Shown: one piece after another, positions 700-41,985 of the stretch
Layout: each line of letters opens with the position of its first letter
Numbering within the stretch: the first letter of the stretch is position 1
Assembly: GCF_006345805.1 (NCBI RefSeq)
Contig: NW_021834786.1
Location: forward strand, 1-64,000
From: Octopus sinensis
Lineage: Eukaryota
Length of the DNA stretch: 64,000 nt
Direction of reading: 5' to 3'
Program-made: the position numbers and the translations under genes
The notes under the pieces: generated by a model
What the model saw: the letters and a program-made list of their open reading frames with translations, nothing else
Told to the model about the DNA's origin: nothing
The model's database searches: none

Positions 700-830
700 A
701 AAGCAGAAAGAATGTCTTCAGTGTCAGGATTCACTTATTCTTGGAGATCTTCAACAACGTTCTTCTTCTTGTAGTTCTTACACTACCATTCACATTTCAA
801 GAAGCTTTCCTTTGGTTTCATCTTAAAGAT
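700..830 (+). CDS. SLC18B1-like gene 1, first in-window exon
   Basis: Open frame SRKNVFSVRIHLFLEIFNNVLLLVVLTLPFTFQEAFLWFHLKD ends at a GTAAGT donor (831). The end resembles SLC18B1 'GFLDPTLSLFVLEK' and phase 0 joins exon 8048. Start assumes the AG at 698-699; the AG at 693-694 leads to a stop. Confidence 0.6.
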
Positions 831-852
831 GTAAGTATTATTCTTCGTGTAA

Positions 853-978
853 GAGGGCTAGTCGATTAGATCGACTCCAGTACGCGACTGGTATTTAATT
901 TATAGACCTCGAAAGGATGAAAGTCAAAGTTAACCTAGGCGGAATTTGAACTAAGAACGTAATGGCAGATGAAATACC
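853..978 (-). mobile_element. 3' part of the tRNA-derived SINE that hosts the Tx1 insertion
   Basis: On the - strand it begins at GGTATTTCATCTGCC, then box-B-like TAGTTCAAATTCC and the SINE body. The box-A half of the head is absent here. Confidence 0.75.
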
Positions 979-1399
979 AATTTTTTTATTGCCCACCGGG
1001 GGCCAAACATAGAAATGGACAGAACAATTGATGGGATCAGTAAAACGGTATGATTTTACATATAATGTGACTATAAAAATTGAAATAGAATATTAAAAAA
1101 ATCGAATGGAATTAACAATACAAAGACAATACAAATGAAGCGATGATCAGGCCACGCTCCGATCCCACAAGCCCCGATCTACCGCTTGTCCCTTTTTTTT
1201 TCTTTTTTTTTCGTCTATTCACATGGTTCCTTGCACGCACAATACTCGTGCAACATGCTTCCATGTCTTTTCGAATGTACACTCCGACAGACATCTCTTC
1301 ACCAGCCAGAGTTTCCTTTTCAAATGAAAAGAAAAAAAAATGATCGTAAATTGTGGCCAGAGATAAAGTTGTCTGTCCTAATTCCTTTTATCCTAGTCT

Positions 1400-2083
1400 T
1401 CCATACTGCCTCTTTCGCTTCGTTAAAACTCTCGGTGATTCAATTTTTATAATTAACTCAGTCGTCAGCTGTACTCTTCCTTCGCCAGACATCAGGTGTT
1501 CAGCATGAGCCCACATTTCAGTTATCTCCGGACACTGAACAATAGCGTGAGGGACGGTTTCCCTGTCCCCCGCATCTTGGACAGGTCGGCGACTGACGCT
1601 TACCGTGTCTTGTGAGCTTATCCCAAACGGGCAAGGCACCTCTGTAGCATTGCCAGGTTAAGGACTTTTGGAAGTTGTCCAACGTTCTAAACCCGAATGT
1701 ACGGTGAAACAGGTTGTCCAGTTGAATAAACCCGAGACCTAGAGTCGCCCCCAGGCCATCGTCGCATTCAGATTCTAGCAACCCACTATATAAAATCCGT
1801 GTGGAACCCCCACCGTTCGCGTTGCCCGAGCGCCGGATTAGCAAGAGGGCCTTACGGCAGTCTTTATGCCACTCGCTCGACCTCGATCTACGAGAACACC
1901 AGGCTTCCTGTTCGCAAAAACTTTTGAACTCAGGAACATTTGTCTGGCCAGCGGAGACCACATCCGTTCACTATCCAGGAGAATCCAGAGGTGCCTCAAC
2001 CTCAACGCATGTCTGCGCATCATTATAAAAGGCATCCCTAAACCTCCCTTTAAAGGCTTTTGACAGCAGACAGAGCCTTCCAT
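1400..2083 (-). pseudogene. Tx1 ORF2 C-terminal remnant (post-RT and zf-RVT region)
   Basis: KPLKGGLGMP..ALRLRHLW, then LTWQCYRGALPVWDKL..SPTCPRCG / ETVPHAIVQCPEITEMW across frameshifts. Confidence 0.8.
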
Positions 2084-2097
2084 TTTCCTTTTGTTGT

Positions 2098-3024
2098 TTA
2101 TTTTTTCTTCTGTTTCTCCCTCTCTCTTTCTTCCTCCTCGCCGTCTGATTCTTCTACACCTTCTTTATAATATTTTTTAATGTGACCCAGTTGGCCATGC
2201 TGGAAACATCGGGGCTTACGCCCATCAACAAAAATATTTAGAACTTCCTCTTCTACTTCCACGATTTCTGGGAGCTGTTCTAAAATCTTTTGGCCAGCCT
2301 GCAGTATGAGGTAAGTGTTTGACCAGTCCAATAGGTATTCTCTGTGACGGTAGCCTGCAGGAGGTTCATATTATCTTCCCTGTTTGCTAGGACTGCCGCC
2401 ATCGAGCACATAGGGTTTACTCCGGGTGGAATTCTTGGTATTCTCACTTTTGATGTTCTCATTCCCATGTAAATTGGGATTAACATTGTGTCTTCCGACT
2501 CTAAAGATTTTACCGAGTATTTTTGTGACGTTTCTGCGTTCTTGAATCTCACCACGATGGTTCCAAACTTCTTCCCTCTGGCTAGATATGTAATGTCCTG
2601 CCAGATGGGTTTTAGATATTTTTCATTTTTTTGCTCACATATCTTATCAATTTTACGAGCTTTTAAGCAGAATGTCTTAAAAATAATAATTTTCTTTTTT
2701 TCCTCCGTAAATTCTTCTTCTGGTATTTCCAATTTTACTACTCCATCTCGTTCTGTTATCATATCTTTGTATTTTAGTAATTCTTTTTTGTCAGTTGACA
2801 GCTGTCGCGTTCCACTACCAGCTGCTGACGCAAAACTTTTCCTTTCTTCATTTTGGATGATCCTTTCTTCTGTCTTCCTTTTGGTGTTCGTAACTTTTAG
2901 TAATGCCAGGAATTCGCTTTCCGACACATCAGAAACGTTATCAAAAAATTAAACTTTCTATTTTCTTTACTTCTCGCTCAATCGATGATTCATCACCCGA
3001 CGAAGAAGACAAACTTTTCGGCAT
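2098..3024 (-). pseudogene. Tx1 ORF1 (gag-like) remnant
   Basis: ATG at 3024 (MPKSLSSSSGDES), frameshifts near 2945 and 2320, degenerate zinc knuckle GRKPRCFQHGQLGHIKKY. Homologous to the ORF at 63616. Confidence 0.75.
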
Positions 3025-3191
3025 CTTGCCGGCAATTAATGTTTACCCTCACAGGAGAAAACCACAGATAGCTTTCGAAAGAAAACTATACTACAATTTT
3101 TTCAACAATAAGCACAAGAAATATAACAATTAATAGAAACTTACGAACACACTCCAACAATAAATTTTCAATAACAGACGTACGAAATACC

Positions 3192-3423
3192 TATTTCTTT
3201 ACTACCCACAAGTGGCTAAACACAGAGAGGACAAACAAGGACAGACAAACGGATTAAGTCGATTATATCGACCCAGTGCGTAACTGGTACTTATTTAGTC
3301 GAGCCCGAAAAGATGAAAGGCAAAGTCGACCTCGGCGGAGTTTGAACTCAAAACGTAGCGGCAGACGAAATACCGCAAAGCATTTCGCCGGGCGTGCTAA
3401 CGTTTCTGCCAGCTCGCCGCCTT
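3192..3423 (-). mobile_element. tRNA-derived SINE with Tx1-derived tail (tail B)
   Basis: Head GGCGGCGAGCTGGCAGAAACGTTAGC..GAGTTCAAACTCC (box A/B-like), shared body, tail ..GTTTAGCCACTTGTGGGTAGTAAAGAAATA. Confidence 0.85.
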
Positions 3424-3449
3424 GATGTAAGTATTATTTACAATAATAT

Positions 3450-5297
3450 AAGGCGGCGAGCTAGCAAAATCGTTAGCACGCCCGGCGAAATGCTTAGCGG
3501 TATTTCATCTGCCACTACGTTTTGCGTTCAAATTCCGTCGAGATTGACTTTACCTTTCATCATTTAGGGGTTGATAAATTATGTACCAGTGAAACACTGG
3601 GGTCGATGTAATCGACTAGTCCTATCCCACAAAATTGCTGCCCTTGTGGCAAAACTTGAAGCTATTTTTTATAGTAATTATAATTGTTTTAAATTTTGGC
3701 ACACAGTAAAAAAATTAGTGTGTGGGGAGGGTGGAGTTAGTCGATTACATCGATCCAGTACTTCACTGGTATTATAGTTTATCGGCTCCGAAAGGAAGAA
3801 AGTCAAAGTTGACCTTGGCGGTATTTAAACTCAGAACGTAAAGGGCCGGAAGAAATACCGCTAAGCATTTAGTCCGACGCACTAATGATTCAGCCTGTAC
3901 ACCACCTTAGTAATGATTTCTGATATAGGCATAAAACCAACAACTATCGACGTAGTACTTGACCTACTTTTATTTATCCTGTAAGAATGAAAGGTAAAGT
4001 TCACTTCAATGGGATACGAGTTCATAACGTAAAGAGTCGGAACAAATGTCGCAAAGCATTTTTTCCGGTGATTAACGATTCTACCAGCTCGCCGCCATTT
4101 TAATATTTTCTAATTTTGATATAAGGTTAGCAATTTTGAGAGAAGGATTAAGCCGATGTCATTGACCCCTATTCTTGACGAGTACTTTATTTCATCGATC
4201 CCAGGATTTGAACTCAGAACAGTATTAGAACAAAAACCGTAAAGTATTTTATTCTACACTGAAAAGATCTGTCAATGCACTGCCGATATAGCCAGAAATT
4301 TTTAAAGAGGGGTTAATTGACCCCCATCACTTGATCGGTACTTCGAAATCAGATGGGTGAAGGCAAAACTGATCTCGGCGAGATTTGAACATTCAACTTA
4401 AAAAGCTGTAGTTAAATACTTTTGTCAAACACTTTAACGATTCCGCCAATTCAATAATAAAAATTTCTTTTAATGGCCACAAGGGCCGAAAGAGTTTGGT
4501 GACAATGTAAGAACGAAATACACACACTGCAAATTTAGGTTGAATAAAAAGAAAGTATATATTTAGACAAGCGTGCTAAATATTTTGCCGGCACGCCGTC
4601 TTGATAATAGTAATAATTATTTCAGCTTTTAGCACAAGGTCCGCAAGTTCACAGGAGGACTATATATTAATTACATCGACCCAGTGCTCATTTAGTACTT
4701 ATTTTATCAACACCGAAAGGGTGAAAGGAAACGTTCACCCCGGCGGAATTTGTACTCAAAACGTAGCGACAGGCAAAATACCACAAAGCATTTCATCCAG
4801 CGTGCTAACGATTCTGCCAGCTCACCGCCTTAAGGATATTGGGCTTGTGCATAATTATTGCGGCTTTTTTTTCAACAAATTTCATTCAACAAAAACAATA
4901 ACAATATTTAACAAAAACATCTTTAAATAACGGTCTGACCGTCTGCCAAGCAAATGGGAGGCAGTAATTGAAGTAGATGGTGAATATGCTCTGGAATAAT
5001 CATTTAAAGATGGTTTGTTACTTATTGTTATTGCTCTTGTTGAATAAAATTTGTTGAAAAAAGTCGCAATTATTATGTACCAACCCAATAATAATAACCC
5101 TTTCTACAAAAGGCACAAGGCCTGAAATTTGTGGGGAGGAGACTAGTAGATTACATCGCCCCCAGTGTTTCACTGGTGTTTATTTTAATGACCCCGAAAA
5201 GATGAAGGGCAAAGTCAACCTCGGCTGAATTTGTACTCAGAACGTAGTGACAGGCGAAATACCGTCAGCGCGCTAACGATTCTGCCAGGTCGCCGCC

Positions 5298-5367
<70 letters not shown>

Positions 5368-5578
5368 CCTTTCTACTATAGGCACAAGGGCTAAAATTTG
5401 GGGGGAGGGGTAAGTTGAATACATCGAACCCAGCGCTCAACTGGTACTTATTTTAATGACCCTGAAAGGATGAAAGGCAAAGTCGTCCTCGGCGGAATTT
5501 GAACTTAGAACGTCGGGACAGCCGAAATGCCGCTAAGTATTTTGCCCGGCGTCCTAACGATTCTGCCAGTTCACCGCC

Positions 5579-5581
<3 letters not shown>
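3450..5581. mobile_element. Cluster of about 9 variously decayed copies of the same SINE family (tail A where visible)
   Basis: Repeated GAATTTGAACTCAGAACG and GTCGACCTCGGCG cores at about 3450(+), 3700, 3950, 4130, 4300, 4630, 5100 and 5370. Tail A reads CCTTGTGCCTATAGTAGAAAGG(ATT)n. Confidence 0.8.
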
Positions 5582-6833: not shown

Positions 6834-6907
<74 letters not shown>

Positions 6908-6908
<1 letters not shown>

Positions 6909-7311
6909 GCTTTCTACTATAGGCACAAGGCCTGAAACTTGGCAGGAGACGGGAAATACTCGATTATGTCGACTCCAGTGTTTCACTGGTATTTAAGTTA
7001 TCGACCCCAAAGGGATAAAAGGCAGAGTCGACCTCAACGAAATTCGAACTCAAAAAGTAGCGACGGGCGAAGTACCTATTTCTTTACTACCCACAAGGGG
7101 CTAAACATAGAGAGGACAAACAAGGACAGACAACGGATTAAGTCGATTATGTCGACCCCAGTGCGTAACTGGTACTTAATTTATCGACCCCGAAAGGATG
7201 AAAGGCAAAGTCGACCTCGGTGGAATTTGAACTCAGAAGAACGTAATGGCAGACGAAATACGGCTACGCATTTCACCCGGCGTGCTAACGTTTCTGCTAG
7301 TTCGCTGCTTT
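6908..7311 (-). mobile_element. Nested SINE: tail-B unit inside a tail-A SINE at the GGTAYTTC site
   Basis: The - strand reads [head 5' half][body + tail B ..GTAGTAAAGAAATA][GGTACTTCGCCCGTCGC.. body + tail A]; junction at 7077/7078. Confidence 0.8.
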
Positions 7312-7342
7312 AACAACAACAACAATAATAATAATAATAATA

Positions 7343-13659: not shown

Positions 13660-14740
13660 TATATAGAGCCGGGCGTAAGTCTGTTAATCTGTTAATCGTT
13701 AATTAACGAAGTTAACATTTTCGTCAACGACTTAAATTTAAAGGTAACTTTGAAAATCGTTATTGGACTAATTAACTTCCGTTACATTTAGCTTCTGTTA
13801 AGTCCGTTAACGCAAAAATTTTATAAAAACCGGTGAACATTTAAAAGTTTCTATTATTTTCAGATTTTCATAGCACATTTAATATTGTACGCGTCATTCT
13901 TTCAACCCCAATATAATGCCACTTATTATTATAAATAACTCGTTTGGCCCTGCCTTGCTTTGAAACCAAATCCACCCGCTTGTTGCTTGCAAAGAGAGCG
14001 GAAAGTTTCTTTGTCCTGTCATGAGGGAAGAGTGATTGATGTGCTTCCACTTGATCCAGGACCTCGCTGAGGTGGATGTCAACAGAAAAAATATTGATTC
14101 CATAAAGTGGAAAAAATAAATGGAAGGAAAACTTTGGTAAATATTTTAGTATGAACGCAAACAGCTGTTACGTGGTAGCAGGGCATGCTAGAAATTGCAG
14201 CCAAACCTTTCCTTTCTTGGAAAAAGGAGCCGTTTACGCGTGATTTCGATGTCATATTCGTTGAAAGCATGCAAAATAACCTGAAAAATAAAAAAGACCC
14301 GCGAAACAAAACTCACTTGGTGGGAAACTTTGAGATCTTCGCCACCCCTCCCACCTTTTCCGGAAAAAAGTGACTTGCGACATGTTTGGAAGTCAGATAC
14401 GTTGAATGCACCTGAAAAAACTGTGGAAAGAAATTATTCCACACATAGGTACGAAATGTTTACCGAAAGAATAAAATCTTGTACTGATTATACCTATATT
14501 TAATTAAGTTCATCGTGAAAAGTGGCAAAATTCTTGCCGGATGCCATCTGAGATAATTTTAGAAACAAATCAAACAAGTAAGATGCATTAAGAATTTCAA
14601 TGTTATTGCTTTTACACCTGTTAATTAAAATTACCTGCGCATGAAAGTCAAATTTACGTAGTAATATCAGCTAAAATTACATAAATATAAACCAGTGGTA
14701 TATAAAGCACCCACTGGAAAAATTTCAAATCTGTATGTAA
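13660..14740. mobile_element. Possible decayed hAT-like DNA transposon
   Basis: TAGAGCCGGG terminus with GTTAAC-rich subterminal repeats and a weak BED-like remnant on the - strand. Confidence 0.35.
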
Positions 14741-14868
14741 AAAATTTACTGTTACAAGCAAATATTGTGGACACCCCTCTTGAACCTGAATAATTCAAAA
14801 TAACGTGAATAAGCATTACATTTGACAGATTAATATAAGCACTAAAGATGCATTTTTTTCTTACACAT

Positions 14869-15272
14869 AGGCGCAGGAGTGGCTGTGTGGTAGTAGCTTG
14901 CTAACCAACCGCATGGTTCCGGGTTCAGTCCCACTGCGTGGCATCTTGAGCAAGTGTCTTCTACTATAGCCTCAGGCCAACCAAAGCCTTGTGAGTGGAT
15001 TTGGTAGACGGAAACTGAAAGAATCCCGTCGTATATATGTATATATATATATATGTGTGTGTTTGTGTGTCTGTGTTTGACCCCCTAGCATTGTTTGACA
15101 ACCGATGCTGGTGTGTTTACGTCCCCGTCACTTAGCGGTTCAGCAAAAGAGACCGATAGAATAAGTACTGGGCTTAGAAAGAATAAGTCCCGGGGTCGAT
15201 TTGCTCGACTAAAGGCGGTGCGCCAGCATGGCCGCAGTCAAATGACTGAAACAAGTAAAAGAGTAAAAAGAG
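14869..15272 (+). mobile_element. CORE-like tRNA-derived SINE (second family)
   Basis: GGCTGTGTGG..GGGTTCAGTCCC head, GGCATCTTGAGCAAGTG core, internal (TA)/(TG), tail ..GACTGAAACAAGTAAAAGAGT. Other copies at 17385-17845(-), 44080-44720(-), 61815-62200(-) and 63100-63298(-). Confidence 0.85.
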
Positions 15273-15751
15273 TATACGCATAACATGGTCTCACTCGGTT
15301 GGGACTACACATGTGTTACTTTGACATCTTTCCATAAATTTTGTTTATAGGGAGAAAAATATTGAAAATATCAATAGATGCGTGAGTGAGAAAGAAACGA
15401 GGAGGAAGGTTGTTCAGGAAGATATTGATCTTTTCCAGAGTACTTAGAGATTCTGTCCAGATTAAAAGCAGTCGTCATGTTATCTCTTTCATGCCTTTTC
15501 AATATACTTTCTAAATGCAGTGCTATAGCTTTCCTCTACATCGACTTCCTGTCCTATCTTTCCCAAACCTCAGAAACGAATTCATTTTTACTTCGTTTTG
15601 ATGTAGTAAGCCTCTACAGAAATATTCCATATGATTTTGGAATAAAGACGATTATATACGGGCAGATAGAGAAGTAGTATATATATGCGCGCGCACACAA
15701 CACACACATGTTCTAGTCTGTGTTAACATCCCCCTTTTTGCTTCATTGCAG

Positions 15752-19169: not shown

Positions 19170-22100
19170 TGTAGGGTACTGCCCAAAGATCTATGAAAGA
19201 TGAAATGTAGACAGGAACTTCGCTGCGGGCTAGCTGGCGAAGTTGACTTCCGGTTATGCAGGCTTTCTACTAAGCAGGAGTTGACTGGCGGCTATCGCTC
19301 TCCTCATGTATTTAACTCAATAAATCTTTCCTTATTACATTGTGGGTCTTATCTAATTTTTTTTGTGTATAGCTTAAATAAAGCTATAACTGGTGACCCC
19401 TCGAAAGAACAACAGCTTTTGCTTCGCACATCGAAGTCAATAGAAAATCAAAGAAACATAGCAAGAGATCACACAACTGTACTGAAGCTACCACAGTTCT
19501 GGTTGAAGAGATCTGAGCTATGGTTTGTGCAGGCTGAAGTGCAACTTAACGTACGCAATAAAACTCCAAACCTAACAAAATATTCGTGTGTAGTAGCGGC
19601 ACTAGGTGAAGACACGGCCACGAAGGTGCTGGACATTTTAACACAACCCCCAGCAACGCACAAATACACTACGTTAAAAGACAGCCTGATGGATACATTC
19701 CGTTGGAGCGAACGGGAAGCGGCATCAAGATACTAAAGGAAGAATTAGGCGATTCCATACCTTCGGAGTTGATAGACATGATGTTGGCATTAGTTCCCCC
19801 TGATGAATCACTTTCCTTTTTATTTTGGGAAATATTCCTAGGCAAGTTACCACTCTAGATCCAGACCCTCATAACTCAGACCGAGATCAAGGACTTGCGG
19901 CAGTTTGTGAAAGCAGCCAACAAACATTTTTTTATCTAGTAGTGTTATAGTCAACGCAATTGGGTCTGTCCTGAGACATGGTAGAGTTAAACAAGACGAC
20001 CTGTGCTTCCACCACACAAAGTTCGGCAAAAAGTCTACGAAATGCAAACAACCATGTTGCTTCAGGACTCCTTGGCCATCGGCCCCAGGAAAATCCAGGG
20101 CCGACCGCCACTGAATACCCTGGTGGCCGGCAGACATGATCACCTGCTCCTCTATGTCTGAGATCGGACCTTCGGACGTAGGTTCTTAATCGACACAGGA
20201 GCAGAAGTCAGCTTGATCCCTTCGTCGGCAAGAGACCTCCGTTACTGAAAGCAACAGTCAACCTTTAACGGCCGTCAGTGGCCCCACAATCGAGGCGTTC
20301 GGTTGCCGCATCAATTCTCTCAACATCGACTCACAAAATACACATGGGCATTCACCATCGCCGATGTCCATCAGCCCATTATCGGGGCAGACTTTCTTCG
20401 AGCATACTTGCAACTGGTTGATTTGCAGGGGAGACGACTCATCAACAACAACACATATGCCTCCGTGTCTCTGGCAACATCTGCACATGCTGCCTCCCGC
20501 ATAGCAACGGTCTCTCAGACCTAGAATGAATTCTCGAGTCTCCTTTCGAGTCGCCCCACGCCGACATTCTCCAAACTTACAACCTGCTATGGAGTAACAC
20601 ACCACATCCCCATCACTGGCCCTCCAGTATACAGCCATGAACGTCCTCTACCACTAGACGAATTGCTATTGCAAAGGCTGAGTTTGGTAATATAGAGGCG
20701 TTGGGCATAGTTCGTCGATCAAGCAGTCCCTGGTCGTCACCCCTTCATGTGGCACCAAAACCCAATCGAGGTTTGCAACCTTGCGGAGATTACTGGTATC
20801 TCAATGCAAATCCTTTTTAGCACGTACAGGACTTCTCAGCCCAGTTAGCCAGGTGCTCGGTTTTCTCGAAGGCCGATTTATTCCGTGGTTACCAGTACAA
20901 GACGATGATGTACCGTAAGTCGCAGTAACCACTCGTTACGGGCAGTATGATTTTCTACGTACACCCTTTGCTCTGAAAAACGTGGTACAATCCTTCCAAC
21001 GCTTTATGGACACCACGTGCAGGGTCTTGACTTTGACTTTGCATATTTAGATGATATCCTTATCGCAAGCCAAAATGCGAAGCTACACAAGAAGCGCCGA
21101 GTTACTGTTTTTGATAGACTTTGACAGTATGGTCTAGTAATCAACCCCGCCAAGTGAGTTTTTGGTGTTACAGAAATTGACTTCCTGGAACACTGAATCA
21201 CAGGCGCTGGTTCTACGTCCTTGCCAGAAAAAGGAAAGCTATCATATCCATTTCACGCTCCTCCACAAGCAAAGCTGTACACCAATTTCTGGCCATGGTA
21301 AACTTTTACCATGCCTCATCCCTTCTGCAGCAAGAGGAATGAGATCCTATACAAGGCACTGTCAAAAGATGGTTCGAAAAGATAGGTGGAGTGGGATGGT
21401 GCAATGACCCCAGCCTTCAAATTCACTAAACAAGCTCTGGCTAAAGCAATCATGCTGTCCCATCCACATATGTCATGTTTGACTACACTCACAGTCAATA
21501 CCTCCGACACATCCACTGGGGGCATTTTGGTCAGTGGCGACCACTTGCCTTCTTCAGTCAACAACTACGACCTGCTGGCTGTCTATCTAGGTGTCTGCCA
21601 CTTTTGCTATTTTCTTGAAGACCGTAGGTTTGCAGTGTTCACGTTGCAACCCGACAGATGACGATAGTAGGACCTACCGCACTGCTATCGCGTCACTTTC
21701 CTTGCAGGATGTGCATTTGGCTCCAGTGGCATAATCCTGCTGTGTCATGTAACCACTGGGAAGCTACGATTGATCGTCCCATCAGCCTGGCGCAAGAAAG
21801 TTTTCGACGTCATTCATGGACTGTACCATCCGGGTAATAGAGCCACACGGCACCTGCTGTCGAGCAAATTTATCTGGCACGGTATGGCCAAACAAACTGG
21901 GGAGTGGACCAAGACCTGCATCCACTGTCGATAAGCCAATGTTCATTAGCACACTAAAGCACCTCTCGGTAACTATGAATCACCAAAGACCCGATTTAGC
22001 TACGTTAGCATTGACCTTGTCGGCCGCAACATGGAAACACAAGAAGTCAGCCGAGCCTTCATCACAAACTGAGTTGCCCCTTTCGGTGTCCCAGACAGCA

Positions 22101-23044
22101 TTTTATCCGATCGGGGTCCACAATTCACCCCAAAGCTGTTGAATGACATGTGCGATCTTTTTGGAATCACAATGAAGCGTATAACAGCCTACCATCCACA
22201 GGCCAACGGGTTAGTGGAGAGATTTCATTGCCGCCTGAAGGAATCCCTGACAACCAGACTTAACGGGTCCATTTGGCTTGATCAACTTCCATGGGTGATG
22301 CTGGGAAATCGCACCGCCCCAAAGGAAAATCTCAACACTTCTTCCGCGGAAATGGTGTATAGTGCCCCTCTTACAGTGTTAGGAGAGTTCCTTCCGAACC
22401 TGAAATCAGACCCGGATGTCAAAAGATACCTCGCGCAACAGAGAGAGTGTGGGCCAGTTGCGCCCTATTCTCATGTTGCACCTAGATCATCCGTATCAAA
22501 CGACCTCTGCACAGATAACTTCGTGTTCGTTCGACGTGAAAACCTCTCCAGTCACCTTACGATGACCCATTGAAAATCATATGTTCAGGAGACAGATCAT
22601 TCCAAATCTTAGTTGGCGGACAACAAGGCGCAGCTTCGATCGAAATGTTGAAGACGGCCCATCTTGATAATGATAGCTCCGTCCAAGTAGCTCGACCACC
22701 AAACAGGAGCCGCCCCAAGCAAATCACACCAACCCTCGACAAGGAACAATCACCAAAGAGCCGTGTAACCACACACATGGGCAGGGCAGTTAAAACGCCT
22801 TCTCGGTTCCAATGACAGACAACAGTTCTGGAGAGCGGGGAGCTATATGTAGGCCCAAGAATTTAACACATGGAATGTAGACAGGAACTTCGCTGCGGGC
22901 TAGCTAGGGAGATGGTCTGCGGCTAATTTGACATCCGGTTAAGCGGACTTTCTGCTAAGCAGGAGTTGACTGGCGGCTATCGCTCTCATGTATTTAACTG
23001 AATAAATCTGGGTCTCCGTTAATATTTTTGCGTATGGCTATACA
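19170..23044 (+). mobile_element. Decayed Ty3/Gypsy LTR retrotransposon, CsRn1-type
   Basis: LTRs at 19170-19390 and 22848-23044. PBS TGGTGACCCC at 19391 (tRNA-Trp-like) and PPT GGAGAGCGGGG. Gag KLPQFW..WFVQAEVQL and Cx2Hx9Cx3C motif (CFHHTKFGKKSTKCKQPC). Protease FLIDTGA, RT AYLDDIL, integrase YHPQANGLVERFH. Many stops and frameshifts; no TSD recognised. Confidence 0.9.
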
Positions 23045-29014: not shown

Positions 29015-29532
29015 ACGTCAAAAACTAAACAATTTTCCATTGACGTCGTAGTGGAAATCTACAGCTGCCCACGCAAATTCTTATTGCTTTTATTATTATT
29101 AGTTAAAAGGTTGCTGGGCTGGTAAAAGCTGTAAAGCGTTGGGAAAAATGCCTTGCGTTAATTGTTCCGTTTCTATATATTTTGAGATCAAACACTTCCG
29201 AGGTTAACTTTGGCTTTCATTCCTCCGAAGCAAATAAGATAATGTACAAATCAAGCTCTGGGTTAGATTAAATTGACAGATCTCTTCCTGTAAATCTTCA
29301 GGTTCTTTGCCTATATTAGAAACAATTATTGTTATTGGTTGAAAGGCAAAGCACAGGACACTAACTTGTGGAATTTGTTCTGTTACTTTACATTCTCATT
29401 TCAAATCCTCTCATGGGCAACTTTGCCTTTCATCTCTCTAGGATTAATAAAATAAAGTACCAATCAACTGTGTGGTCAATTTAGTAGATTAAACTTTTTT
29501 TCCAGAGTTTTGGCTTTGTACCTAATTAAAAA

Positions 29533-30521: not shown

Positions 30522-31039
30522 ACGTCAAAAACTAAACAATTTTCCATTGACGTCGTAGTGGAAATCTACAGCTGCCCACGCAAATTCTTATTGCTTTTAT
30601 TATTATTAGTTAAAAGGTTGCTGGGCTGGTAAAAGCTGTAAAGCGTTGGGAAAAATGCCTTGCGTTAATTGTTCCGTTTCTATATATTTTGAGATCAAAC
30701 ACTTCCGAGGTTAACTTTGGCTTTCATTCCTCCGAAGCAAATAAGATAATGTACAAATCAAGCTCTGGGTTAGATTAAATTGACAGATCTCTTCCTGTAA
30801 ATCTTCAGGTTCTTTGCCTATATTAGAAACAATTATTGTTATTGGTTGAAAGGCAAAGCACAGGACACTAACTTGTGGAATTTGTTCTGTTACTTTACAT
30901 TCTCATTTCAAATCCTCTCATGGGCAACTTTGCCTTTCATCTCTCTAGGATTAATAAAATAAAGTACCAATCAACTGTGTGGTCAATTTAGTAGATTAAA
31001 CTTTTTTTCCAGAGTTTTGGCTTTGTACCTAATTAAAAA

Positions 31040-40100: not shown

Positions 40101-41575
40101 AGCTCCCAAATGTAACGGGGGCATATCGCCGTCTATGATATTTGTACATGTTGATGCTGTTTTAAGAAATGTTGTCTTAAAATTATATCTACAAACAAAT
40201 TACTAAGTACCACTAGATTTACTTGCTCGTAAATTCTTCCGTGAAGTTCAATTGAACTCATACAATAACCGTTGCTTTGGGAACGATTTCCATTGACAGC
40301 CATGTTAATTTCATTCCTTTCAGACTTCACCACCAATTTGTTTTTCTTTGCAAAGTCTTTGCTAATATGATTCATAGTAGAGCCGGTATCAATCAAAGCA
40401 AATGCTTTCACGCCATCGACTGTTATTGTATAATTAACTTTAGTAGTAACTCCAACTTGACATAAAGCCACGGCGAAGTTGCCATCATCAAGAGCTGCTG
40501 ATGTCTTATCGAAATTTTTACGGTTACTTGACCGGCATTCTTTAGCAAAATGACAAAAAATCTACATTTGTAACACTTGCTCCGCCTAGCAGGACATTTA
40601 AACCTCGGATGAAATTCATTAGATCCGCAAAAGGTACAGGATTTTTGAGTTCGTTTTGTCGCTGTACAAGGTGTGTTTCCGTCAGGAATTGAGATTTTGT
40701 CTTCTTCACGTGGAATAAACGTTGACAAACAGCTTCCCTGGCTGTTTATAGCAGACTGACTGCTATTATACACTTCGGAATTCCTTTGAGCAACTTCCAG
40801 CGGACGGGCTTGGTTAAATATCGCTTCTAAAGTTATCGCCGCATCTTGAATATTTTCTAAAAGTCTAAGGCGAGTTAAAGATGACGTTAATCCCGAGATA
40901 AATGCGTCACGAACAGCTTCATTTTTGTGAGTCTCAGCGTCTACAGCTCTGTACCCGCAATCTTTAGCTAGTCGTTTCAATTTCTGTAAATAGTCGTCAA
41001 CTGATTGACCTGGTTCTTGTTTGCATGTCATTAAAAGGTATCTCGCAAAAATAATGTTCAATGGTTTCACGTACATTCTCTCCAGAGTTTCAATTGCTTC
41101 TGAGTAATTCTCACATTCACATATGAGTTCGTAAGTGTCTTTATCTATGTGCGCTATTAAACACTTAAGTTTGCTTTCATCCGTGATAGGCGGTTCAGCA
41201 GGGCATGATACTAAAAATGTTTTTTAAGTTGTGAACCAATATTTCCATTCTTTCGAAGCTTGACTCGAACTTGGATTAGCGGTGAACAAATTTGGTTTTA
41301 TAAATTTGCTGTACATTTTCTCTCGCTCTCTCTCTCTAGCTATATATAGTCGCTTAAATTGCTATAAACCCAAACTCGAATATCGAAATACAATAAAAAC
41401 TCGAATAATAATATACAATACAAACAAAGATTGCTAAATTGTAAGCAAAACCAAACTTCAACGCAATAACATTTTTATGCAGCGAGTTGCTACATTCTAG
41501 ACTAAAATCAACGCAGAACACGTCGTGCTGCAAACAGAACAGAACTCCGCGCAGTCGCACTGCAGGCATATAACA
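37200..41575 (-). mobile_element. Decayed Ty3/Gypsy retrotransposon interrupted by Helitrons
   Basis: Putative LTR ~41345-41575. Gag (WKYWF..ARYLLMTCKQ..QSVDDYL), protease ALIDTGST, RT SPWRAQV..RLCIDYS..FSTLDL and YIDN, RNase H TDASEVA..YSCIEKEA. Resumes at 37537 with RWRIEL..NVASDTLSR and the integrase zinc finger, then is truncated. Confidence 0.9.
37538..38950 (+). mobile_element. Tandem array of three non-autonomous Helitrons
   Basis: Units start TCTATATATATAAAA (37538, 38054) or TCTTTATATATAAAA (38557). 3' hairpin CCCGAGCAACGCCGGG plus CTAG (38053) or CCAG (38950). Inserted between A and T without TSD; removal restores the Gypsy frame (FMFN|CQKRSKPKNEK). Confidence 0.9.
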
Positions 41576-41754
41576 GCAATCGAGACAATCAAAATCACGT
41601 GATCAAAACTAAAATCACAAGTATTGACTTGCTCTTAAATAAAATTCAATTTATACTGACAACATTAAACACGATTAACTATAGGCTGTTTCTAAATTCC
41701 AGATCTTGTGCTTCTATTATTATTATTATTATTGATGTTGTTGTTGTTATTTAT

Positions 41755-41985
41755 AGCAGCGAGCTGGCAGAAACATTAGCACGCCGGGCGAAATGCTCAG
41801 CAGTATTTCGTCTGTCGCTACATTCTGAGTTCAAATTCCGCCGGGGTCGACTTTGCCTTTCATCCTTTCAGGGTCGATTAAATAAGTACCAGTTACGCAG
41901 TGTGGTCGATATAATCGACTTAATCCGTTTGTCTGTCCTTGTTTGTCCCCTCTGTGTTTAGCCCCTTGTGGGTAGTAAAGAAATA
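41755..41985 (+). mobile_element. Third tail-B SINE copy
   Basis: Full head, body and tail ..GTTTAGCCCCTTGTGGGTAGTAAAGAAATAGG, followed shortly by a decayed SINE head fragment. Confidence 0.85.

Follow-up and report, generated by a model that had tools for sequence, protein, structure and literature searches.

A LINE lineage and a LINE-tailed SINE that appear to share one insertion site inside an abundant octopus SINE

Near its start, the 64,000-bp stretch of Octopus sinensis DNA analysed here (contig NW_021834786.1, positions 1 to 64,000; hereafter the window) carries a composite of retroelements in which one old short interspersed nuclear element (SINE) has been hit twice at a single internal site, by a SINE unit whose LINE-like 3' tail we call tail B and by a long interspersed nuclear element (LINE). 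The relevant features of the composite all lie on the minus strand (Table 1). An exact 15-mer, the longest repeat common to both flanks, occurs in the window only at 828-842 and 3424-3438, and this perfect outer duplication indicates a single original SINE insertion. Inside it, three direct copies of GGTATTTC (971-978, 3184-3191 and 3367-3374; GAAATACC on the plus strand) bound the two inserts, and the internal site that both occupy is GGTATTTC(G), at about positions 49-57 of the SINE. The LINE has its 3' end at 979 in ..GGGCAATAAAAAAATT, followed by GGTATTTC and by a SINE body without its head, which is 80.7% identical to SINE positions 49-166 and 16% diverged from the tail-B SINE consensus. 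Tail B has its 3' end at 3192 in ..GTAGTAAAGAAATA, followed by GGTATTTCG, and belongs to an inserted unit of SINE body plus tail B that measures 175 bp (3192-3366). An earlier note on this DNA, made from the letters alone, had given the coordinates of the first two site copies correctly, had described a duplication of about 10 bp with one CpG change, and had seen that both 3' ends run into the same site sequence; extended by two bases, the copies flanking the LINE (GGTATTTCAT and GGTATTTCGT) are indeed identical at 9/10 positions with one CpG-type change, and a third copy is now added. Its placement of the LINE inside the SINE holds for the internal site, but the 5' copy, GGTATTTCG, follows tail B of another SINE unit and not the SINE head.

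Table 1. Features of the window: the nested composite, the further tail-B SINE copies, and other elements (ORF, open reading frame).
Feature	Position	Strand	Remarks
Outer target-site duplication, copy 1	828-842		GATGTAAGTATTATT on + strand; flanks 3' end of original target SINE
Original target SINE, 3' part, headless body	843-970	-	Begins right after the site
Target-site copy 3, GGTATTTC	971-978	-	Directly downstream of LINE 3' end
L1/Tx1-type LINE, non-autonomous, internally deleted, 2,204 bp	979-3182	-	Matches L013/L014 copies
LINE 3' tail aligning with tail B	979-1043	-	Includes hairpin GCCC-CCGGT-GGGC
ORF2 C-terminus remnant, three reading frames	1388-2083	-	zf-RVT PF13966
ORF1, frameshifted, ATG 3024-3022	2098-3024	-	Identity to O. 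vulgaris ORF1 P0004
Target-site copy 2, GGTATTTCG, between tail B and LINE 5' end	3183-3191	-	
Tail B, 67 nt, LINE-like 3' tail of inserted SINE	3192-3258	-	19-mer copies; LINE-tail alignment
SINE body of inserted tail-B unit	3259-3365	-	
Target-site copy 1, GGTATTTCG	3366-3374 (GGTATTTC part 3367-3374)	-	
SINE head, sole head of composite	3375-3423	-	
Outer target-site duplication, copy 2	3424-3438		Minus-strand reading AATAATACTTACATC
Second tail-B SINE	7077-7310	-	
Headless target SINE behind second tail-B copy	6907-7076	-	Begins GGTACTTC; ends tail A + (ATT)n
Third tail-B SINE, exception	41755-41985	+	Then GGATATATA(10)T, then old SINE from about position 36
DUF7041 ORF, transposon-derived	19200-19736	+	E = 2e-16
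Integrase-core fragment rve_3	22139-22573	+	E = 5e-5, below Pfam cut-off
Weak Retrotrans_gag match	40423-41076	-	E = 0.0045

The same arrangement recurs in a census of 130,453 bp, to which the counts that follow refer unless the window is named; it joins the window to three O. vulgaris chromosomal loci (L013-L015, 66 kb) that a protein search with the ORF1 of the LINE had led to. Eleven of the 13 complete LINE or tail-B 3' ends adjoin GGTAYT at SINE position 49, where random insertion in the right orientation would be expected about once in 10,000. Both LINE 3' ends (2/2) are followed by GGTATT, and the LINE ends share their base position with nine of the 11 complete tail-B ends, which run into GGTAYTTC and a SINE without its head, so that the tail-B SINE shares the insertion signature of the LINE. 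The join to the target is exact (...GCTTAGC|GGTATTTCG..., at about SINE position 49), and GGTATTTC(G) is duplicated on both sides of the insert over 8-9 nt, possibly up to 13. At the other end of the LINE, all three 5' ends of the family are preceded by GGTATWTCG and the single 5' end of a sister family (66-70% identical) lies at the same site, all four following GGTATWKCG, and together with the two 3' ends they put the LINEs at GGTATT(T/G)CG; at L013 and L014 the GGTATWTCG before the LINE is the end of a SINE head, and the flanks upstream of it are unrelated. Seen from the target, ten SINE fragments begin exactly at position 49, eight of them after tail B and one after the LINE, and the only two such fragments in the window stand behind tail B and behind the LINE. 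The last 19 nt of tail B occur exactly three times in the window, where chance would give 0.03. The 130 kb contain about 23 sites that can still be recognised, on which the figure of once in 10,000 is based: in 13 of them head and body are contiguous, and about 10 are occupied. Some have been used repeatedly, giving head-body-tailB-body-tailB-body trimers (at L013 and L014 closed by tail A) and LINE-LINE tandems, as at L015, where a LINE 3' end is followed by GGTATTGCG and then by the 5' end of the sister LINE in tandem occupancy of one site. The proposal of the earlier note that a LINE family and a LINE-tailed SINE subfamily insert at a fixed SINE site is thus supported by 11 of 13 3' ends, including those of loci that it had not seen. 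Elsewhere in the window, a minus-strand SINE (5230-5298) has a deletion of about 14-17 nt directly upstream of GGTATTTC (..GCGCGCTGAC|GGTATTTCG), which may be a target-site scar or a coincidence.

The likeness between the LINE end and tail B, which the earlier note had also recognised, is strong: the last 37 nt are identical at 28 positions without gaps (z = 12.4; 0/2000 shuffles), and a semi-global alignment over about 65 nt scores 21, where shuffles average 3.7 (z = 9.6). Tail A, the ordinary SINE tail, has no similarity to the LINE (z = -0.2). A LINE copy at L015, which ends ..GGGCAATAAAGAAATT, is nearer to the final 16 nt of tail B than the window LINE is, and a related tail ends relatives from Argonauta (L016), a JGI contig (L017), an ENA contig (L018) and a Logan contig (L002). 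Because the Argonauta 3' end matches tail B better (score 25, z = 11.5; L017, z = 7.9) than the window LINE does, the actual driver of the tail-B SINE may be a sister family of the latter. In the Logan contigs of more distant relatives (L002, L019-L022) the tail motif alone is conserved, and the 3' flanks are not SINE-like. A 4-bp hairpin with a CTTGT-type loop near the 3' end has 87.5-90.6% of its cells paired against 65% in shuffles (0/500 reach this value) and 22-50% in slid controls, and three of its four pairs change on both sides, in a test of 6-8 sequences whose register was picked by eye.

Ordinary SINEs end in ..TTTCAGGCCTTGTGCCTATAGTAGAAAGG(ATT)n (window 5145-5579, 6835-6907, 7311-7340 and 41715-41750), and new SINE heads often stand directly on the (ATT)n of another SINE. 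Tail A has a hairpin of its own, AGGC-CTTGT-GCCT, which resembles the 3' hairpin of the LINE lineage. A descent of tail A from that same lineage was considered and rejected: once (ATT)n is left out, its similarity to the Argonauta end is weak (z = 3.4; 52/5000 shuffles) and that to L017 is absent. A scan of metagenomes for tail B gave nine matches, all of them chance matches in bacterial genes.

The LINE copy in the window is a dead deletion derivative. The earlier note had called it a Tx1 element. ORF1 and the zf-RVT end of ORF2 (PF13966, E = 1.6e-8) are all that it contains, and no endonuclease or reverse transcriptase (RT) domain was found in this copy. Its first 1,111 nt are 90-93% identical to the O. 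vulgaris copies at L013 and L014; compared with these, everything between the end of ORF1 and the C-terminus of ORF2 is missing, with a deletion junction (GGCTC|TGTCTGCTG) at about 2073/2072, just downstream of ORF1. The frameshifted ORF1 has 82% amino acid identity to the intact 371-aa ORF1 P0004 of O. vulgaris, whose CCHC zinc knuckle (CFQCGHLSHIKKYC) is degenerate in the window (CFQHGQLGHIKKYY); Pfam gave no domain in ORF1. The paralogue at L014, 93% identical over the shared 1.1 kb, extends into Exo_endo_phos, the apurinic/apyrimidinic-type endonuclease (APE; E = 2e-10). An exhaustive HMMER search with the ORF2 C-terminus of the closest relative returned 616 relatives; the window remnant is 47-52% identical to relatives whose full ORF2 consists of APE, RVT_1 and zf-RVT, and the alignment of one full-length relative, from Argonauta hians, to human L1 ORF2p is collinear (E = 1.9e-53). 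The RT domain is retained in none of the four octopus copies of the family, a protein search with the ORF2 C-terminus gave three matches, none from the same family, and one with the APE fragment gave no matches; a named Tx1 reference was not among the proteins returned. On these sequence features, the APE and zf-RVT domains, the CCHC-bearing ORF1 and the collinearity with human L1, the lineage belongs to the L1 superfamily, and it is probably Tx1-like. Target specificity is common, though not general, among elements of the Tx1 clade. L1-Tx1 families have been annotated as recently active in O. vulgaris (PMC13282606).

Other copies and relatives of the LINE have peculiarities of their own. At L015, an internally deleted LINE (13716-14136) has an RT fragment joined straight to the 3' untranslated region, and the adjoining sister-family element (14137-15350) has ORF1 fused in frame to the C-terminus of ORF2, with a breakpoint that differs from that of the window copy; internal deletion with both ends kept seems to recur in this lineage. 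Full-length relatives stand head to tail in tandem in Argonauta hians (L016, BAAFZT010000048.1; matches at 2501, 8519 and 14518, period about 6.0 kb), and those at L018 (390-3855 and 8001-11462) form a head-to-tail tandem array with a period of about 7.6 kb. The Argonauta and L017 elements have (ATT)n at their 3' ends. This suggests insertion into a microsatellite, or into one another, by other branches of the lineage. At L014 12859-13350, about 1.1 kb downstream of the end of the LINE APE frame (about 11731), the translation looks by eye like a fragment of a Tc1/mariner-like transposase.

The flanks of the composites show separate insertions and not copies of one dimer. The downstream bodies, at 7-22% divergence from the tail-B consensus, have 3' ends that vary from locus to locus, and some 5' junctions have variants private to the locus: at L013 (9436-9722) nine private variants are common to the downstream target and to at least the first 46 nt of the inserted unit, which then returns to the tail-B consensus, while at L014 the shared stretch is 20-43 nt long and in the neighbouring unit less than 13 nt. 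Because the length of these stretches depends on the locus, the 5' junction falls at a variable point within the homology between the SINE complementary DNA (cDNA) and the resident SINE, which accounts for the single head of each composite and for a duplication that is not fixed at 8 bp. A reading without site specificity, in which a SINE family copied as dimers or trimers has tail B, GGTATTTC and body as its internal junction and the LINE lies there by chance, would explain why the same junction recurs in composites and why variants are common to some neighbouring units, as GAGTTAAAATTCC is to the three units of the L013 trimer. We think it almost certainly wrong, however, since the downstream bodies are of different subfamilies, ages (7-22%) and 3' ends, the shared variants are private to each locus and do not extend beyond the 5' part of the inserted unit, the LINEs lie with four 5' ends and two 3' ends at the identical base in SINEs whose flanks are unrelated, and one tail-B SINE at L015 has no SINE body downstream. 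Unequal crossing-over or replication slippage between neighbouring SINEs, which would build the arrays without retrotransposition, is a very unlikely source as well: adjacent units in the L013 and L014 trimers are nearly identical, L014 units 2 and 3 share TCTACCGTTAAG and L013 units 1 and 2 share private tail variants, as such exchange would predict, but it can neither originate the junction between tail B and GGTATTTC nor put LINEs at the same base, and it leaves the old, diverged downstream bodies behind young units unexplained. Both readings are therefore rejected as primary causes, although unequal crossing-over may add copies secondarily.

We thus consider it highly probable that a LINE lineage of the L1 superfamily with an APE, probably Tx1-like, integrates sequence-specifically in the abundant octopus SINE and that the tail-B SINE goes to the same site; as both insert in an abundant SINE, the commonest repeat of the genome would be their landing site. 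We are equally confident of a further part of this reading, that the tail-B subfamily has exchanged the ordinary SINE tail for the 3' tail of the LINE lineage. By analogy with target-primed reverse transcription, the APE endonuclease would nick the antisense strand at 5'-..CGAAATACC^GCTAAGC..-3', the RT would recognise the shared 3' tail through its small covarying hairpin and A-rich end and would prime from the nick, and the second strand would be cleaved about 9 nt or more downstream; the cDNA of the SINE, being homologous to the target, would then have its 5' end completed by annealing to the resident SINE. The tail-B SINE would accordingly be mobilised by its partner LINE through the shared tail. 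A different mechanism for the same site-specific insertion would derive the preference mainly from RNA-DNA homology and not from recognition by the endonuclease: since source copies sit in SINEs, their read-through transcripts would carry GGUAUUUCG, and this extension (GGUAUUUCG... after the tail) would anneal to a nick or break in a SINE and so fix the start of reverse transcription. Tail B and the adjacent target sequence lack a T4 run, which makes read-through by RNA polymerase III plausible, and the exact junctions without poly(A), the clear use of homology at the 5' junctions and the third tail-B copy of the window, in which GG follows the tail at a non-canonical site, all fit this mechanism. 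Against it, the LINE lands at the same base though it has no SINE homology beyond the duplicated 9-13 nt, two LINE families whose 5' regions are only 66-70% identical use the same site, and the literature ascribes the target choice of APE-type target-specific LINEs mainly to the endonuclease (PMC4494074); we regard homology as an unlikely main determinant of the site.

Several observations weigh against the reading that we prefer, an endonuclease-directed insertion of LINE and tail-B SINE into the resident SINE. Two tail-B ends are exceptions to the site, one at L015 being followed by (CATA)n and the third copy of the window by GGATATATA(10)T, and a headless SINE at L013 (1090-1208) has no recognisable LINE or tail B upstream; this SINE begins exactly at GGTATTTC, and the sequence upstream of it is CA-rich and of low complexity. 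The sample, 130 kb with about seven tail-B loci that are independent, is small, and matches to the LINE ORF1 were the route to three of the four loci. Folding of single tail sequences gives values no better than those of shuffles (z from -0.3 to +0.5), and the register of the hairpin was chosen by eye. The heads of the composites lie about 6% from the tail-B consensus, like the inserted units, and the downstream bodies about 13%, a comparison that is circular with respect to the origin of the heads because the consensus was built from these same heads. Finally, we infer both the role of the endonuclease in setting the site specificity and the Tx1 assignment, the family copies found having neither an RT nor a complete ORF2.

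We put forward with more doubt the possibility that the tail-B SINE is a self-homing SINE, which would enter resident SINEs where the promoter-bearing head meets the body, resolve its 5' end by homology and reuse the head of its victim. Were this so, even a 5'-truncated cDNA would regenerate a complete source gene of head, body and tail B, each hit would split an old copy and turn an ordinary SINE into a new tail-B master, and a retroelement would be parasitising its own family by a conversion-like route that avoids the usual cost of 5' truncation; for the LINE, too, about a million SINE copies would be safe places to land.

One claim of the earlier note was not confirmed, namely that the SINE head is tRNA-derived and that the site lies between boxes A and B: ARAGORN found no tRNA in the head, Rfam gave no tRNA match on the head alone even at E <= 10, and what can be seen is a box-B-like GAGTTCAAATTCC about 20 nt downstream of the site. 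Octopus SINEs are labelled tRNA-Core or tRNA-Deu in published annotations (PMC8967140). At 3389-3484 of the window a minus-strand SINE head (3423-3375) and a plus-strand one (from 3451 onwards) stand head to head and form a long, near-perfect inverted repeat with a CCCGG variant in both heads; this repeat gives sub-threshold Rfam matches to microRNA precursors (44 bits against a gathering score of 91).

Other elements of the window include the DUF7041, rve_3 and Retrotrans_gag frames (Table 1), which are probably remnants of retrotransposons with long terminal repeats (LTRs). The part of the window at 20-24 kb is relatively GC-rich (0.43-0.49). The same pair of old SINE fragments, with identical alignment statistics, occurs at 29118-29502 and 30625-31009, 1,507 bp apart, which indicates a local tandem or segmental duplication.

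LINEs of the R1/R2 type, specific to ribosomal DNA, show, as in the octopus, one fixed target base, tandem occupancy and 5' junctions aided by co-transcribed target homology; R2 has a restriction-like endonuclease, and the targets of R1 and R2 are ribosomal RNA genes and not a SINE. The closest precedent is the crocodilian pair of Tx1-Mar and SINEU (Kojima 2015, PMC4494074), in which L1/Tx1-type LINEs and a SINE likewise share one site inside another transposon, tandem SINE insertions likewise sandwich the target duplication, and co-mobilisation was inferred from the common target. The crocodilian elements insert into a Mariner DNA transposon, and their SINE heads come from small nuclear RNA (snRNA) genes, whereas the octopus target is itself a SINE, the partner SINE belongs to the target family, with its tail swapped, and thus targets its own relatives, the 5' junction appears to be resolved by homology, and the homology of the tails is explicit (28/37). 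Tx1L of Xenopus (target Tx1D), Keno (U2 snRNA genes) and Kibi and Koshi ((TC)n and (TTC)n microsatellites) are, in the summary of the same source, likewise APE-type, sequence-specific elements with multicopy, harmless targets, among which it lists no SINE; the other targets of the Tx1 clade that it names are a piggyBac-type DNA transposon, U2 snRNA genes, microsatellites, LTR elements and Harbinger transposons (PMC4494074). By their (ATT)n ends and tandem arrays, the Argonauta and L017 relatives of the octopus LINE stand closer to the microsatellite-targeting branch. In stringent-type LINE/SINE pairs, too, the SINE bears the 3' tail of its partner LINE, which is probably recognised through a small conserved 3' hairpin (Kajikawa and Okada 2002, cited in PMC4494074; PMC4176376); such pairs integrate without sequence specificity, however, and recognition of the tail in the octopus is proposed from sequence alone. 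A full-text literature search, whose coverage does not extend to Repbase Reports, returned no report of a SINE as the target of a LINE or of a SINE targeting its own family. The octopus elements represent a familiar type of site-specific retrotransposon with a target, the SINE, that is new.

With our findings, the targets known for sequence-specific LINEs of the APE type would come to include a SINE, and a SINE directed at its own family would be documented as a natural case. SINEs and LINEs have each been annotated at roughly 12% of the DNA in octopus genomes (PMC13282606), and such insertion would account for the SINE 'dimers', 'trimers' and nested LINE/SINE composites of these genomes, which repeat annotators would otherwise split into spurious families. 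A compact APE endonuclease with a defined site of about 20 bp or less would also be a tractable system for the specificity of L1-type endonucleases, and the variable, homology-assisted 5' junctions at these loci would keep a record of how target-primed integration finishes its second half.

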